From positions 186,001 through 250,000 of the forward strand of contig BQFW01000005.1 of NCBI GenBank assembly GCA_020891255.1: a stretch of 64,000 bases of DNA, read 5' to 3'. Numbering within the stretch: position 1 is the stretch's first letter; the number at the start of each line of letters is the position of its first letter. This document shows, one piece after another, positions 19,001 through 40,103 of the stretch. Both the position numbers and the translations under genes were made by a program. Below the pieces are notes generated by a model. It did not search any database. It saw nothing but the letters and a program-made list of their open reading frames with translations, and was not told where the DNA came from. The stretch comes from Entomortierella parvispora E1425. Lineage: Eukaryota > Fungi > Mortierellomycota.

Positions 19001-19159
19001 GACAATATCCGGATGGCCCATGAGGATGATGACGACGACAACAACGACGGCGATGATGACGACGACGAGTTTCGGGGCAGATACAGGGACGAGGGCGAGT
19101 ATGAAGATGAGGGCATGGGTCTAGAAGATCCTGAAGAAAGATCCATGTTTGCAAGTTAA
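16034..19159 (+). CDS. Patatin-like phospholipase / triacylglycerol lipase (TGL3/4-like, DUF3336 + patatin), multi-exon
   Basis: WKNDP..GYYD, LYSQTYHGTKK.IEDY, YGRTALCLSGGAGFGYYHLGVVRAL, GTSAG, LTFLEAYERTGRILNISV, FKDGSLRADIP, NYTIVSQVNPH. Confidence 0.95.
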
Positions 19160-19511
19160 ACTGGCTCTCTCCATACTCATCGCGCTACGCACTTTGAAAC
19201 AACCTATACCAATAAAAAAAAAAGGATCATCCCAATGGCTGTAGTGAACTGTCACCCATGGCAATGGAGTAGAGGCGGAGGAAGAGTGCAAGGCAAGGAA
19301 GTGGTGTAAAACTTTCCGCTCCTATCACACAAGCAGTACCTCTCATTACAGCGTCTTTGTCATAGAGATTTGATTCGTAAGTCAATATCTGCAGTCTCCT
19401 GGCCTTTGATCGTTCAACTCATCTCAGAATCCCTTTTTTCCAAGGAAAGGGACTGCATCCTCGACAAAGCCACAACTGCGACTTCTCCAAAGCTTCTTTG
19501 TGAGTGCAGGG

Positions 19512-19625
19512 CAAGGATTTGCTTTCAAGAACCAAGGACTCGATAACCGTAGTCTCAGGATACTGCTGAAAGATGATGATAACTACACGCGCAAGTATAT
19601 CCAATGATCTATGGTGGTTCTCTTG
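19512..19625 (-). repeat. Dispersed repeat / decayed gene relic, copy 1
   Basis: Aligns by eye with 22127-22243 (same orientation) and, including its flank from 19501, with 39025-39086 (inverted): shared CAAGGATTTG(C/T)TTTCAAGAACCAAG..AGTC(T/C)CAGGATACTGC.GAAAGA..ATCCAATG..TGGTTCTCTTG. Confidence 0.75.
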
Positions 19626-20267
19626 TGATCTTCATGGGCTGAGTTGCAGTAAAATGAGGAGATGTGTGGGGATGGGGCACTGCGAAAGTGGGTGCTCCTG
19701 CAAAAGTTGAAGTGTCACGATTGAGTCTCGAACGGCCCGATGTATCGTTGAGAACTACGAGGGTTAGATAACAAAGTCCCGGAGGAAAGAAGGCTGTACA
19801 TCTTGAGCTATCGGTCAATCGCACTCGACATCTGACCCTTTGCAAGGTAAAAGACGCCTTCACTGGATACTCTTAGGCAATGAAGAGTTGAGCCAGGAAA
19901 CCAAGCAGCTTGATCCGTCAATGGTTCAAAAAAAAAAAAAAAAAAAAGTTCCATCCGAAGATTTTTCCAGTGGAAGTTTGACGCGCTTGAGAAGTTCCTT
20001 GTTCTTGATCATCTACTAAAAAAATGGGGCCTTGAGAAGCTCTTTGTTCTTGATCATCTACTTCATTCAGGGATCCATATCCAAGAGTATAAGCGATGTG
20101 AACTCAAGGAGCTCCTTTGAATCCTGGCCTCCCCTTCGTTTTGCGTCAAGCCAAGCCTTCGACTTTGAATCACTTATTTAACTCTGTGTCCATTTCACAT
20201 CTTTCTACCCAATTCAGTCAAGCTCCACAACTGCCTCTACCACCACTCCAACCTCCAGCACCACACA

Positions 20268-22053
20268 ATGAAGTTCCAATATCTCATCGCCTTTGTTGCT
20301 CTCTTAGGCTTTGCCTTTGCTGCCCCAGCGTAAGTAGGCATCCATTCTGAACAGCAGCGTCAGGGTGTCGTCTGCCGGCATCTTTGTCATATACATGTCT
20401 GACCCTCTCCATTGGCTTTTTTCATTTTGCTTCATCAGGCCGTAAGTTCAAGAATGCAGTTGCCGCAATGTGCAACATCTATATCTATAATCCATTTACA
20501 TGATTTCCACAAAGATCACATCTAACATGGTTTTCTTTCTCTCTTTTTCGGCATCTCTGCTCTGTGACAATCAGTGGGTAGGTTGAATCCTTTGCCTCTC
20601 CTCGAGGACAAAAAAAGTATAGTGGTGAGATCGACAACAACGACAACAACGGAGAAACTAACCCCATGTCATTCTCTTTAGCTTAATTAGCGGGTAAGTC
20701 GCATCTACGAACTAGTGCTCCAGGGCAATACCAGAGACACAGCTACAGCAGTACCGAAACTAACCCTGAGCCATTTTCCTCTGATTCTGGCTTATCTCCA
20801 TTAGCGAGTAAGTTGAATCTACGGACTTTTATTCGAAGACAATGACAGAGATGCAGCTGCAGCAATACCAGAACTAACCCTGATCTATTCTCCTCTGTTT
20901 CTGGCTTATCTCCATCAGCCCGTAAGTTGAATCCACGAACTTGTGCTTGAGGATAGCGACAGAGACGCAGCTGAAACAACAAAGAAACTAACCTTGAGCC
21001 CTTCTCCTATTCCTTGGCCACCTCATTAGCGAGTAAGTTGAATCTACGGACTTGTATTCGAAGACAATGACAGAGATACCGAAACTAACCCTGAGCCATT
21101 CTCCTCTGATTCTGGCTTATCTCCATCAGCCTGTAAGTTGAATCTACGGACTTTTCTTCGAAAACAATGACACAGACGCAGCTGCAGGAATACCAGAACT
21201 AACCCTGATCTATTCTCCTCTGTTTCTGGCTTATCTCCATCAGCCCGTAAGTTGAATCCACGAACTTTTGCTCGAGGACAGCGACAGAGACGCAGCTGAA
21301 ACAACAAAGAAACTAACCTTGAGCCCTTTTCCTGTTTCTTGGTCACCTCCATTAGCAAGTAAGTTGAATCTACGGACTTGTACTCGAAGACAATGACAGA
21401 GACTCTGCTGCTGCGGCAATACCGACACTAACACTGAGTCATTCTCCTTTGTTTCTGGCTTATCTCCATCAGCCAGTAAGTTGAATCTACGAACCTGCGC
21501 TTGAGGACAATGTCAGAGGCGTAGCTGTTGCTGCTGCGGCAATACCGACACTAACACTGAGCCATTCTCCTTTGTTTCTGGCTTATCTCCATCAGCCAGT
21601 AAGTTGAATCTACGAACCTGTGCTTGAGGACAATATCAGAGGCGTAGCTGTTAACCCCGGTCCTTGTCCCCCGATGTTTCTGCTCACCTCAATTAGTATG
21701 TAAGTCAAACCTATAGCCTTTCATCTGCTTCAAGGACGCGACAGTTGAGGAGACTGTGGTCAACATGGTTAATTATCTCAGGCTGTGAAGCCATATCTAC
21801 CTGTTTGGCCTAATCGCTGATCATTCTCCTATTGGCGTCTTCGCTTGGTCTAGGCATGTAAGTTGACCGGAGGAAAGCGCTTCTGGTTCAAATAACATTC
21901 TGTGTGCGAATCTTCTCTCACCCACCTCACTGCCATCGCTGTATTTCCACTCCATTAGCCTGTAAGTCCTTGTTGGTTTATTAAGTACCAAAACCAAAGA
22001 ATGTTTTAGTTCCTTGTTAACGCCTTACCTTTTCCCATCAGCCTCCACCATAG
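20268..22053 (+). CDS. Micro-exon gene encoding a 38-aa secreted peptide precursor MKFQYLIAFVALLGFAFAAPAPGGDPDLPNHHMHPPPP
   Basis: Exons: 20268-20329; 20439-41 GCC; 20575-77 TGG; 20691-93 CGG; 20805-07 CGA; 20919-21 CCC; 21030-32 CGA; 21130-32 CCT; 21244-46 CCC; 21356-58 CAA; 21473-75 CCA; 21596-98 CCA; 21697-99 TAT; 21854-57 GCAT; 21959-61 CCT; 22042-53 CCTCCACCATAG. Each internal exon is flanked by YAG and GTAAGT (one GTAGGT). Most upstream introns have a CTAAC branch site, the rest CTGAC/TTAAC/CTAAT-like variants. The joined 117 nt form an uninterrupted ORF with a signal peptide. Confidence 0.8.
20578..21696 (+). repeat. Tandem array of ~100-123 bp intron+micro-exon units with a 325-bp higher-order duplication
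   Basis: Unit consensus GTAAGTTGAATCTACG(G/A)ACTT..GA(A/G)GACAATGACAGAGA..GCAGCTG..AACTAACC(C/T)TGAG..TTCTCCT..TTTCTGGCTTATCTCCATYAG-NNN; 20808-21029 closely matches 21133-21355. Confidence 0.95.
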
Positions 22054-22126
22054 TCAGACTAAGATGTTCACCTGGCCCACGATTAGGGCTGAAATCCTTT
22101 CGTCGAAACTTTCTCACGAATGCCAT

Positions 22127-22243
22127 CAAGGATTTGTTTTCAAGAACCAAGCGATCTGCAGTGACTATAGTCCCAGGATACTGCAGAAAGACGATAAACA
22201 CGCTTGCACACACATCCAATGTTTCCACGCCTTGGTTCTCTTG
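22127..22243 (-). repeat. Dispersed repeat / decayed gene relic, copy 2
   Basis: Homologous to 19512-19625; ORF-track peptides LDILARVVIIIFQQYPETTVIESLVLESKSL vs LDVCASVFIVFLQYPGTIVTADRLVLENKSL. Confidence 0.75.
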
Positions 22244-22360
22244 AGGCGGTTGTGTACCAAGCGTTGATCTGACGCATCACAGTCGTCTTCTAAGCTCTTT
22301 TCAACACGTTGTATGCCTTGAGAAAAAGAGTGGAGGGTGACAAAGAAAGAAGCCAACCCA

Positions 22361-22400
22361 TCCAATGAAGGGAGCAGGAATCCAATGAAGGGAGCAGGAA
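22361..22400. repeat. 20-bp exact tandem duplication TCCAATGAAGGGAGCAGGAA x2 (contains CCAAT)
   Basis: Seen directly, upstream of the PA-RING gene. Confidence 0.85.
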
Positions 22401-22534
22401 GGAGAGGCCCCTCTAATTGCTGTCAAAGTGAAGGAGCTGGGATTCGGCCCCATTCGCCGACTGCCACGCGATTTTTTGGGACTGGAACGTGACATCTAAT
22501 TTTTTTGACCTTTTTTTCCATGCAGCCTTCGCCC

Positions 22535-22586
22535 ATTCGTTCGTTCGTTCATTCGTTCGTTCGTTCGTTCGTTCATTCATTCATTC
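22535..22586. repeat. (TTCG/TTCA)n microsatellite
   Basis: Seen directly, upstream of the PA-RING start codon. Confidence 0.85.
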
Positions 22587-22670
22587 TTCTGGATACTCTC
22601 GCTTCTCTTTCTCGTCCGCAACCTCCTAGCCAACCCTTCCATTAACCACCATTCAACACACCAAGCAAGC

Positions 22671-24221
22671 ATGGCTTTTCGAGGAGCTACTTTCCTGCTC
22701 TTTGTCAACTGGCTATGCATCGTCATGTGGCTGACTTCGACCATGGAATCATCAGAGTCGACCGTCACTGTCATCGTAAGGTTAAACATGCTTCTTGTTG
22801 TCTCCTTCTCTTCCTCATGTATCGCATCGCGTCTAACCCATGTCTACTCCCATGTCTTGCAGGCCACCAACGACACCTATATCACCCGCACAGCCGGTTT
22901 TGGTCCGCGGATTCCAGAGGAGGGTCTCCTTTTGAACGTTATTGCCGTTGAATCTCTTGACCCAACAGAGGAAACAACGGCCTGTCATGGACCTATTCCA
23001 GCCCCTAAAGACAAGTATAACCCTTGGGTTGCCCTAGTGGAGCGCGGAGGAGAATGTACCTTTGCTCAAAAGGTCCGCAACATGCAACAGTCCGGAGCAC
23101 AAGCAGTGATTGTAGGCGACAACCAAAAGAATGGACTGGTCACGATGTATGCACGAGGTAAGTGAACATGAAACAATGAGAAAAAAACCATTTCAACAGT
23201 TGTTGGTGCGACTCTGGCCTGCGTGCGACACATGGATATAGAGGGATATGGCACCATGGCAAAAATAGTAATGGCTAATTCTCTCTTTTCTTCCTCTTCT
23301 AGAAGACACATCGGATATCACCGTTCCATCCGTGTTCATCACTCAGAACCACTACCGTGAGCTGCAGTACTTTAGCATGGATCTCGGCCAAGGATTTGCC
23401 GTCTTGTTGATGCCTGACGAGGAGGATTGGTAAGCCTTCAAAAAACACCCAAGGAAATTGAATGCGGACCAACTTGATCAGAGAAAGTAACCCCTTTTTT
23501 TTTAATGAATATTAGGCCGATTCTGGACGCAGTCATGTTTGTGATCTTGTCGCCAGCATTTGCAGTTCTGTTCATGTTTTTCCTCTGGAAGATGCGGGAA
23601 CGTCGACAGCGATTGGCAGATCTGGCTCCACCAGAGGTCGTGAGCAACTTGCCTGTTAAAGTCTTTTTCAAGTCCAAGGTCGAGGATAATGACGCAATCG
23701 AATGCGTGATCTGTCTGGAGGAGTACGTGGATGAAGACGAGCTCAGGATATTGCCCTGCAAACATGAATATCATGTGGCATGCATTGACAAGTGGCTGAT
23801 TACACGCAAAAAGTTTGTAAGTATACCTGGAAGAAGGACATAATGACGAATCAGGCCAACGGGAAATGTTTTTAAACTTCTATATTTTTTGTTTTTGTGT
23901 GGTAATTCTTAGTGCCCAACATGCAAGCGGGACATCTGTGCTCCATCAGAGACTACACCACTCCTGGGATCAGGAATGCAACCAGATTACGCATCAGGAA
24001 GCAGCAGCAATGGAAACACGAGTGCGAGCGCCAACTCTTTTAGTAGCACAGCCTCATTAGCCTCACCCACATTGGCATCTACAGGAGCAGCATCAGAGCA
24101 GGACGATCGGCCATCTGAAGTGATTATCCCCGTGTCTGAGCATCCAGTGGCAGAAGAACCTACAGCGGAACGGCCCTCCTCAAGCACTGAGGAGGAGAGT
24201 CATGTTCTGAACAGGGTATGA
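22671..24221 (+). CDS. PA-domain transmembrane RING-H2 E3 ubiquitin ligase (RNF13/RNF167/RMR-like), multi-exon
   Basis: N-terminal hydrophobic signal; RTAGFGPRIP; VALVERGGECTFAQKVRNMQQSGAQAVIVGDN; DITVPSVFI; TM helix; RING-H2 CVICLEEY..ELRILPCKHEYHVACIDKWL..CPTCK. Confidence 0.93.
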
Positions 24222-24664: not shown

Positions 24665-25939
24665 ATGAAGAGCTCGGTCCTCTGTACAAGCAAGCCTAGC
24701 ACGCGCACAGACAATCTTGCAGATGGTCTCATCTTCAGGAACATAGACATGCTGGAAGACTCCATCCTGATATCCGAATTATCTTCATCATCTCAACCTC
24801 AAATTTCTTCGCCCAGGCTTCTCTATGTTTTGTATTCGACCTCTGCAGCACCGCCATCATCGACAACCGGGGCGATCGATTCAGAACCGAGTCTGGGTGC
24901 GACAGGAAGAATCGTGAGCATTGTCGTCTTGGCCACATTGCTTTTCCTGTGTTGCACTGGAGTGGCAAGCTACTTTCGCTGGCGGCAACAAACTCGATTC
25001 TACAAGGAGAAAGGACAGGTGCTCCGGATCTGGAATAACAACCAGTCCAGGAGGGAACCATCGCCACCGACCCCAACATCTTCCACTGTCAGCGAGCTGG
25101 ACAGCAGTAAGTGTTCAGGACTCGGGCCAAGCATCAAGGCAACAACCTCCAGCATCGCGGTTGATGCTCATCTTCGTACGCAGGGCTTCAAGATGAAATT
25201 AATGACAACTTCTTGGCCAACCTGGAGGTCTCCTCGCCCATTCACCACCTCCTCTGCAGCTGCCACAGTACCTCCAGTTGCAGTTACATTCAACAAACAT
25301 GCCGTCGCTACGGCCTCAGACCCTCCAGCAGCACCCAGTACCTTTGCCTTGGCCGGGTATGTGCCCGATCCCGTCGTTGGCGCCTATATGGACAACGCAC
25401 GAAGGCAATACGCAGCCCATCTCGCCAAGACCGGGAACTACCCTCCTCATTACCTGAACCCCATCACGGCACCCAACCTCCTCGCGCCCACCGTCCCGGC
25501 CTCTCTCCCTTCCTTCACTCGACAAGACTCTGATGTCTTTTCCTCCTCCTCGATCGCCTCCAGGACTTTGAGAAAGAAACCAAGGAGCATTTGGGAACGA
25601 GCCTCGGATCGGTTCTCCAACCGCCATGCTCGCTCAGTGGGTCGTTCGCGCGTATCCAAGAACCATGTCTCTCGCTTCTTTCAAGAGAATGCCCGCCCAC
25701 ATTCGCACCCTCTTTACGCACCCCGATATGATAGCGATGATGAGGACGGAGAGGAAGAGGACTTGGATGAGGAAGAGGGGGGCTGTGCGCCAGCTGGACA
25801 AGATAAGGAAGGAAGGGCGTATAGACACCCGAATGACTTTATGGTCCGAACACCCATGACGGTCCAGGAGGCTCAGGCTGCAGCAGCCAGGATCATGGCA
25901 ATGGGGGAGGAGAGGAAAAGAAAGATGGGGGTGTCATAG
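24665..25939 (+). CDS. Hypothetical single-pass membrane protein (Ser/Pro-rich)
   Basis: 424-aa ORF with one TM segment (IVSIVVLATLLFLCCTGVASYF) followed by basic residues; 5' end uncertain. Confidence 0.65.
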   Translation: MKSSVLCTSKPSTRTDNLADGLIFRNIDMLEDSILISELSSSSQPQISSPRLLYVLYSTSAAPPSSTTGAIDSEPSLGATGRIVSIVVLATLLFLCCTGVASYFRWRQQTRFYKEKGQVLRIWNNNQSRREPSPPTPTSSTVSELDSSKCSGLGPSIKATTSSIAVDAHLRTQGFKMKLMTTSWPTWRSPRPFTTSSAAATVPPVAVTFNKHAVATASDPPAAPSTFALAGYVPDPVVGAYMDNARRQYAAHLAKTGNYPPHYLNPITAPNLLAPTVPASLPSFTRQDSDVFSSSSIASRTLRKKPRSIWERASDRFSNRHARSVGRSRVSKNHVSRFFQENARPHSHPLYAPRYDSDDEDGEEEDLDEEEGGCAPAGQDKEGRAYRHPNDFMVRTPMTVQEAQAAAARIMAMGEERKRKMGVS

Positions 25940-38836: not shown

Positions 38837-39024
38837 TAGGACATGGGTGCCCACCTACCAAGAATAAACAATATATCACCCACTTTCTGGAATGGATTGC
38901 ACGATATTGCTTGCAGATATACATTGCCAATTCCTATGGACGAACATGTTGTCAGCTTCATTGGTTTTGTTGTCCAAATAATAACATAAAAAAAATTCAT
39001 TAGAAGGAGAAATGACCGCACATC

Positions 39025-40103
39025 CCTTGGTTTTTTAAAACAAATCCTTGCCTGCACTCACGAGAGAGTTCCGACAAAAGGATTTCCGACCCCAAGTGAG
39101 TGCCTGGCATGGCAAACACGACTCGAAAATCTACTATGGGCGTCTCGGAAGAAAAAAAAAGTAAGTTAGTACAAAGTTGCCTCTCGGCTCCTATAACCTC
39201 TATCTCCAGCAATAACTTACAGACAAATGGGATGGAATGGCCGATTTGGACAGGAGATCAAAGGTCGAGGGGATTTTAGCGCAAGAATGTTTCTTTGACA
39301 GGTTGTGGCCACCCCTCTGCAAATCAAAATCGTGGCCATGGTTCGAACTTAGTGTCCATAGAGCAAAATGAACCTCTCACCCGGGGGGGAGGGGGGGGGG
39401 GTCTGCTCTTTCTCTCTCTACCTCTCTGGTTCTCCATCAGAGGCCAGATGGATTCGGTAGCAATGCCCGAGATGTAGGAAGAGAAGGACAATTCAAAGTT
39501 GGACTCTGGGAAAGCTATATTTATTTTCATATCTTTGAGCTCGCCGCTGTAAGTGCCGTCTGCTCTCTCTGGCTTTTCTGCTCCTCTATTTTCTCTCTTC
39601 AGATTGAGTAAAGAGAACACTGAGGTAGTTCATAGGAATAGGGGCGCTCTAATAAAGGCCGGGAATTGAGGTGACACGATGTTGATGGAGATCAAGATTC
39701 AGGCAGTCGTTTGCTGGATAGGACTTGTGGTGCTGAGTTGACGGAGCTTGGCCTTGAGGCATTGGTAAACTCGTTTGTCTGCCTAGTTTTTGGGCTGATC
39801 CGTGCGCTACCAACTTTCACTGCCCACGCCCATACCCATTCAACCATAATCCGCCTGGTAGAGCCTGTTTTTGACAGGGATGTTCCAGGGCAGACTGGGC
39901 ACTCTGATCGCGTGTGGTTGCTGCTGAGTTCGATTTTTCTGCACAACCGGCGTGCTTTTGAATTCAAACCTGAATTAGGGAGAGGTCCCGTGGATAGACA
40001 GAGACGTGGATCCAGGGTCAGATCACAGTGCACCTCCAAGAGCGGCCGTTGTCCTGAGTTGACTCCAATCCCAGAACAACCAAGGTCATTTCATGGGAGT
40101 TAG
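39025..40103 (+). pseudogene. Decayed gene relic (copy 3 of the dispersed repeat at its 5' end), possibly PD-(D/E)XK nuclease-like
   Basis: 39025-39086 is an inverted copy of the 19.5/22.1 kb repeat; intron-like GTAAGT..CAG segments (~39161-39221, ~39552-39602); many in-frame stops; 3' ORF has a GHSD..AFEFK pattern. Confidence 0.35.

Follow-up and report, generated by a model that had tools for sequence, protein, structure and literature searches.

How could a reading frame be carried across a long series of exons that are each only one codon in length? This question is raised by a locus in the genome of the fungus Entomortierella parvispora E1425 (Mortierellomycota), within a 64,000-nt stretch of contig BQFW01000005.1 (positions 186,001 to 250,000 of the forward strand; hereafter the window, numbered from its first letter). 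There, a gene model at 20268-22053 of the + strand, hereafter the micro-exon gene, consists of a signal-peptide exon, twelve 3-nt exons, one 4-nt exon, a further 3-nt exon and a 12-nt last exon. An earlier note on this DNA had described the micro-exons as modular one-amino-acid cassettes and as a possible combinatorial peptide library. The account that we favor, and consider probable by a modest measure, is that of a young, lineage-specific secreted-peptide gene of the Mortierellaceae with one codon per exon, which would be spliced constitutively and would grow by duplication of whole units.

Anatomy of the micro-exon gene

The gene model, read from the sequence and recomputed, joins into a coding sequence (CDS) of 117 nt with a 38-aa product, MKFQYLIAFVALLGFAFAAPAPGGDPDLPNHHMHPPPP. 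Exon 1 (20268..20329, +; 62 nt) opens with ATG, reads MKFQYLIAFVALLGFAFAAP and closes with two bases of the next codon, i.e., in phase 2, immediately before GTAAGT; its predicted signal peptide, MKFQYLIAFVALLGFAFA followed by AP, displays by eye an n-region K, a hydrophobic core and an A-F-A site. The 15 introns are 80-154 nt long and conform to the consensus GTAAGT…CTAAC…YAG. The donor is GTAAGT in 14 of them and GTAGGT in one, the acceptor is YAG in all 15, and a YTRAY branch motif is located 20-50 nt 5′ of the acceptor in 14 of the 15, mostly as ACTAAC at 38-42 nt. YAGNNNGTRRGT occurs 15 times in the window (13 times in the micro-exon gene, all on the + strand) against an expectation of 2.2 per window, a count reached by none of 100 shuffles. 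Short, symmetric exons make up 13 of the 14 internal exons, each 3 nt long, the remaining one being 4 nt. If the gene is spliced as predicted, 15 introns per 117-nt CDS is, to our knowledge, among the highest intron densities known.

Introns 1-3 (109, 133, and 113 nt) together with the exons gcc (20439-41) and tgg (20575-77) occupy 20330..20690 (+) and form a diverged edge of the array. The core tandem array (20694..21699, +) follows with nine homologous units of an intron and a 3-nt exon, I4-I12, of 97-120 nt, the exons of which read cga (20805), ccc (20919), cga (21030), cct (21130), ccc (21244), caa (21356), cca (21473), cca (21596), and tat (21697). Intron 13 (21700..21853, +) is the longest at 154 nt and leads to the 4-nt exon gcat (21854..21857, +), which moves the frame from phase 2 to phase 0. 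Intron 14 (101 nt), the 3-nt exon cct (21959-61) and intron 15 (80 nt) then span 21858..22041 (+), and the last coding exon (22042..22053, +; cctccaccatag) reads cct cca cca tag, i.e., PPP and a stop at 22051-53, followed by the 3′ untranslated region (UTR).

The recomputed model bore out the phase-2 arrangement of the introns up to the 4-nt exon that the earlier note had described, and likewise the first bases of the exons, which are C in exons 4-12 and T in exons 3 and 13 (G in exon 2). Its figure of thirteen 3-nt exons and 2^13 skip patterns, many of them identical in product, was also reproduced, since enumeration of the 8192 patterns yielded 3552 distinct peptides of 25-38 aa. As had been claimed, skipping keeps the frame and makes no stop: none of the 8192 patterns contains a premature stop or lacks the stop, because no exon ends in TA or TG and a stop codon therefore cannot arise at a junction. 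The further statement that the residue specified by each exon is independent of the exon that follows was correct for followers beginning with C or T; it failed for the G-initial 4-nt exon, to which GA, AA, and CA join to give Glu, Lys, and Gln in place of Asp, Asn, and His. The enumeration showed in addition that the 4-nt exon must be included for the stop at 22051-53 to be reached and, thus, that the gene depends on faithful micro-exon inclusion. When the 4-nt exon is skipped, the frame continues for 74 codons. A long product made in this way was rejected, since the 74-codon tail is junk-like (recognition 1035, best score 0.78) and every frame is open in that region, with open reading frames (ORFs) of 46-76 aa in each.

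Two acceptors are available to intron 3 (20680..20693, +). The proximal AG at 20680-81, already proposed as an alternative, is present and would produce a 12-nt exon (20682-20693) adding Leu-Ile-Ser (LIS), and the distal AG at 20689-90 would produce cgg (20691-93). It is the distal AG, 29 nt from the branch point CTAAC, that corresponds by homology to the acceptors of the other units; the proximal AG, at about 20 nt, is the first AG past the branch point and may be the preferred acceptor, in which case the 41-aa form containing LIS may be the real product. The other optional element of the earlier note, a candidate exon GCT at 21782-84 in intron 13 (AG/GCT/GTGAAG), is likewise found in the sequence, with a weak donor GTGAAG, and intron 13 probably holds a decayed unit at this position.

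Tandem units and splice signals

The array was characterized by TRF as a repeat with a period of 114 nt, 8.5 copies and 75% match. Alignment of the units gave nine clear homologues, I4-I12, and more diverged units at both edges. The locus as a whole presents an unbroken series of ten or more 3-nt exons, set between canonical introns that arose by tandem duplication. Units I5 and I8 are 95% identical, I6 and I9 93%, and I4 and I7 75% including a 23-nt deletion; these three alignments indicate that a block of three units, specifying three residues, was duplicated in frame (I4-6 and I7-9). I10 and I11 are 86% identical. As read from these alignments, the peptide was lengthened by the addition of intron-plus-codon cassettes.

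The distribution of differences among the nine homologous units is uneven. Twelve of the 13 columns belonging to splice signals (GTAAGT, CTAAC, AG) are invariant vs. 27 of the 107 other intron columns (Fisher p = 3.7e-6; 0 of 100000 random 13-column sets reached 12), values to be read with the proviso that units related by descent do not provide fully independent columns. The pairwise difference among the units is 1.7% in the signals and 23% in the remaining intron, and all 40 substitutions among four recent duplicate pairs lie outside the signal columns. Within the unit, variation peaks at exon bases 2 and 3, the two that in phase 2 determine the amino acid, where 67% of pairs differ. GTAAGT/YAG and the frame are likewise retained in the more diverged units at the edges (I1-I3 and I13-I15), and the introns of the neighboring PA/RING gene (described below) are about 85-145 nt long and carry signals like those of the micro-exon gene. 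The splice signals are under selection, and the pattern of conservation as a whole is consistent with a coding gene that undergoes splicing.

The run of C-initial exons, in contrast, does not have the significance that the earlier note attached to it as a sign of modular design. The shared first C of the exons differs in 22% of unit pairs, against 23% for the intron background, and a homologous array from a metagenome contig (L096, see below) has CAG/C as its consensus too; the property is therefore explained by common descent. Most of the codons formed with C-initial exons are four-fold degenerate, and the first C is thus not needed; codon usage does not explain the run either, as third-position C amounts to 31% in five long ORFs of the window. 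A separate observation concerns the first 12-16 nt of the introns (20808-21611), GTAAGTTGAATCTACG, which differ by 8% between pairs at +7 to +16 vs. the 23% background. This conservation extends well past the 6 nt required for U1 pairing and may mark an intronic element that aids splicing beside a 3-nt exon.

Taken as a gene, the locus would encode a 38-aa pre-peptide made up of a signal peptide and a secreted peptide of roughly 20 aa, APAPGGDPDLPNHHMHPPPP, rich in Pro, His, and Gly, the CDS past exon 1 being split into fourteen exons of 3-4 nt. The information for splicing would be wholly intronic (a 5′-terminal GTAAGTTGAATC, ACTAAC, a pyrimidine tract and YAG), and the three exon bases would for this reason be free to encode any residue. 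The array would grow by tandem duplication of a unit comprising one complete intron and three exon bases, and the peptide would change in length and sequence through gain, loss, and mutation of whole units. Neighboring 3′ and 5′ splice sites are separated by only 3 nt and could not both be engaged at once, so the introns would have to be removed one after another. Their removal would be essentially constitutive; some mis-pairing with low-level in-frame skipping is plausible, and such skipping would amount to no more than a by-product. Fungal spliceosomes should be able to handle 3-nt exons, given that a 1-nt exon is spliced with accuracy in Fusarium (PMC12940212). In the predicted peptide, N-terminal Ala-Pro dipeptides could point to trimming, and HHMH and PPPP to metal binding or protease resistance; the metal-binding idea for HHMH, put forward earlier, is conjecture.

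Relatives, a second isolate and environmental contigs

The points that weigh against such a gene come from other genomes, from searches for its product and from the small size of the frame itself. On its 3′ side the micro-exon gene is followed by an ORF (22671-23165) for the PA domain of an RNF13-like E3 ligase, the best named relatives of which are Entomortierella, Mortierella, Linnemannia, Modicella, and Gamsiella proteins. In E. lignicola, Mortierella sp. GBA30, L. zychae, and M. alpina the syntenic loci retain the chitin-synthase and PA/RING neighbors, and in none of these four relatives was the array, or any similarity to 19100-22700, found in the syntenic interval. A second isolate with the same organism label, X3, was compared by way of short-read contigs that are possibly misassembled or paralogous; about 13% of sampled 31-letter words are common over the 9.9-kb stretch searched. 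In the X3 contig the upstream flank is present and is followed by at least six units at ∼113-nt spacing (about 6 vs. 15 here). CGA is replaced by ACC at 20805-07 and CCC by CGA at 20919-21, the acceptors change only between T and C, and GTAAGT is kept. Past 21736 the contig continues directly with sequence resembling 22437-22468, so that some 700 nt (21737-22436) are apparently absent, a gap that would remove the last three exons, the stop and the downstream copy of a dispersed repeat. Absence from the syntenic sites and the shorter array of X3 could mean that the gene is unconstrained or decaying. Searches of sequencing runs returned DNA runs only (the source sample and one other isolate) and no RNA run; the 38-aa product and the LIS and Leu isoforms had no exact match among 15 billion proteins, and a homologue search with the 41-aa isoform gave no protein with common words. 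In addition, the acceptor of intron 3 is uncertain between AG 20680-81 and AG 20689-90, an open frame across 18 codons is by itself weak evidence, and the shared descent of the units tempers the column statistics given above.

The differences in unit number and triplets between X3 and E1425 are suggestive only. Set beside the duplication of whole units and the absence of the array in four relatives, they support the view that the modularity of the cassettes is visible on an evolutionary scale, as judged from DNA comparison. The one-amino-acid cassettes of the earlier note thus stand in this sense: their arithmetic holds, whole intron-plus-codon units have been duplicated in frame, and the other isolate differs in units and triplets.

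Metagenome contigs were scanned for a pattern of two consecutive GTAAGT…YAG-NNN-GTAAGT units, and, (GTAA)n microsatellites being common, only arrays with varied triplets were counted. At least nine contigs carry such arrays (L096, L112, L010, L004, L060, L114, L099, L063, and L077). The array of L096 is homologous in sequence, with 13 micro-exons, and shares GTAAGTTGAATC, the pyrimidine tract and CAG/C, the intron interior having diverged. Arrays of 3-nt exons between unrelated tandem introns of ∼90-130 nt are found in L112 (240-1780, +), L010, L004, L060, L114, and L099; these six are mostly cut at the 5′ end, where frame and signal peptide are unreadable. L063 (7190-8460, +) and L077 (-) contain 17-29 consecutive 3-nt exons between tandem 53-nt introns of the form GTAAGTGC…CTTAC…GACAG, and the L063 contig bears a fragment of a fungal-type amino-acid permease. 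The L063 and L077 arrays belong to another lineage, and the architecture extends beyond the Mortierellaceae. The micro-exon gene resembles L096 and the other environmental arrays in its runs of 3-nt exons between tandem introns; it differs from the environmental arrays in its own peptide, in the phase-shifting 4-nt exon, in the three-unit higher-order repeat and in its location, at which four relatives have no array. The environmental arrays suggest that the design is not limited to one species.

Competing explanations, known systems and flanking features

The same facts could be read as a non-expressed or decaying satellite that arose from one intron and the flanking bases of a former gene and looks gene-like as its copies are young, an explanation that we consider unlikely. 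Units that have diverged down to 57-75% identity nevertheless have invariant splice signals; even at the edges, in I1-I3 and I13-I15, GTAAGT/YAG and the frame persist, no damage is seen in the signal peptide, the frame or the stop, and the L096 array keeps a like architecture. What a satellite would account for is the lineage specificity of the locus (neither array nor similarity at the syntenic sites of four relatives), its different structure in X3, the lack of an annotated or assembled product in protein collections, and intron 13, which seems to contain a dead unit.

The earlier note's library corresponds to a splicing diversifier, in which identical signals would let a 5′ site be joined to any of several 3′ sites downstream of it and in-frame skipping would produce a selected library of secreted peptides; we regard it as quite unlikely. 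The 3552 distinct stop-free peptides are available in principle, the splice sites are identical and none is intrinsically favored, and skipping of a single exon would create an intron of roughly 230 nt, within the fungal size range; the two competing acceptors of intron 3 and the weak extra exon in intron 13 would add further options. Stochastic or regulated pairing of 15 interchangeable introns could then yield a Pro/His peptide ladder of up to 3552 sequences, with a repertoire widened by unequal crossing-over, although we give this little credence. Isoforms of schistosome micro-exon genes (MEGs) vary by exon skipping. In fungi, however, splicing proceeds by intron definition and skipped exons are uncommon, which counts against a library. 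Schistosome MEGs make secreted proteins from exons of 3-81 bp (PMC10526429), and a diversifier at the present locus would, by analogy, be a fungal counterpart of their variation at single-residue resolution, again a doubtful prospect. The run searches listed no RNA run, and neither the product nor the two isoforms tried were found in the protein collections; the 4-nt exon is obligatory, so that accurate micro-exon inclusion would be needed anyway; the C-first property evolves at the intron background rate and is common to L096 by descent; and uniformly near-optimal signals are typical of constitutive introns. Because of these optimal signals, the obligatory 4-nt exon and the background rate at the first C, the evidence leans to constitutive splicing and against a selected library, which, if true, would be very interesting.

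That the introns are themselves the product, released as small RNAs or stable lariats from a host gene like that of SNORD115/116 with an incidental peptide frame, is very improbable: tandem introns are otherwise known from small nucleolar RNA (snoRNA) host genes (PMC11608373, PMC3413130) and the first 12-16 intron bases are conserved beyond the need of U1 pairing, but Rfam gave no match at E ≤ 1 in 20100-22300 on either strand, the folding energies of six introns are no better than those of shuffles (z +0.18 to +1.30), conservation is lowest in the intron interiors, and a signal peptide and exact frame would be unnecessary.

An introner-like element was also considered and rejected, as the copies in the window stand head to tail in one gene, have normal intron size and show no excess structure. 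GTAAGTTGAATC, with at most one mismatch, occurs nine times in the window, all within the array. Fungal introner-like elements are alike in being near-identical spliceosomal introns that multiply in one genome (PMC3609843, PMC4457414), but they are dispersed in unrelated genes, are longer than regular introns and have predicted stable folds.

Full-text literature searches found no description of tandem arrays of 3-nt (one-codon) exons; in the texts found, introns repeated in tandem were confined to snoRNA host genes, and secreted-protein micro-exon genes to schistosomes. The schistosome MEGs share with the present locus a signal peptide in the first exon and secreted products (both predicted here) as well as very short and mostly symmetric exons (3-81 bp, PMC10526429); skipping can vary the MEG protein, as it could in principle here. 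They have no sequence relation to it, and differ in that their introns are long (up to 5 kb) and not tandem copies, vs. tandem copies of 80-154 nt here, that their exons are mostly 6-36 nt instead of a run of 3-nt exons, and that they are animal genes with exon-definition splicing and isoforms seen in RNA and protein, whereas the micro-exon gene is predicted from DNA. Single ultra-short exons, such as the 1-nt exons of Fusarium CYP621A (PMC12940212) and of Arabidopsis (PMC4674806) and the two 3-nt exons in lipS of Dactylellina haptotyla (PMC5639578), demonstrate likewise that spliceosomes accurately include exons of 1-3 nt; those are isolated in conserved enzymes, and here 14 consecutive ones would encode nearly the whole mature peptide. 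SNHG14 (SNORD115/116) is similar in having dozens of tandemly duplicated intron units per transcript (PMC11608373), but each of its introns contains a snoRNA and its exons are non-coding, whereas the present introns match no RNA family and a frame continues after the signal peptide.

If the micro-exon gene is spliced as predicted, it would show that the spliceosome is able to process a long run of one-codon exons, and that a peptide can evolve residue by residue through duplication of intron-plus-codon units. Genes of this kind escape gene callers and are read as satellites, and the secreted-peptide repertoires of early-diverging fungi may be underestimated.

The micro-exon gene is bracketed by two same-strand copies, 2.6 kb apart, of a dispersed repeat of ∼80-120 nt, one upstream (19500..19625, +) and one downstream (22083..22243, +) in the presumed 3′ UTR, the core of which, TCAAGGATTTGTT, is also present 3′ of the L096 array. 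A third copy in the window lies at 39015-39095 (-). The copies are 75-90% identical with a core CAAGGATTTGTTTTCAAGAACCAAG, and in L096 the core is at 1769-1781. The repeat could be a 3′-UTR element of this gene family or a footprint of the origin of the locus.

Further along the window, an ORF at 24665-25939 (+) encodes 424 aa without a Pfam domain; its detectable relatives are only two metagenome/Logan proteins of 56-62% identity, both of which adjoin a RING gene, and it is an orphan restricted to the Mortierellaceae. Three metagenome/Logan contigs with the 424-aa orphan gene end before the array site. Between the micro-exon and PA/RING genes lie a perfect 20-nt tandem duplication (ATCCAATGAAGGGAGCAGGA twice, 22360-22399) and a (TTCG)n microsatellite (22536-22586). 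The presumed promoter of the micro-exon gene contains a run of ∼19 A at about 19930-19948 and a 32-nt direct repeat (19986-20017 and 20031-20062; 94% identical, 45 nt apart), both of them just 5′ of TATAAG at about 20085.

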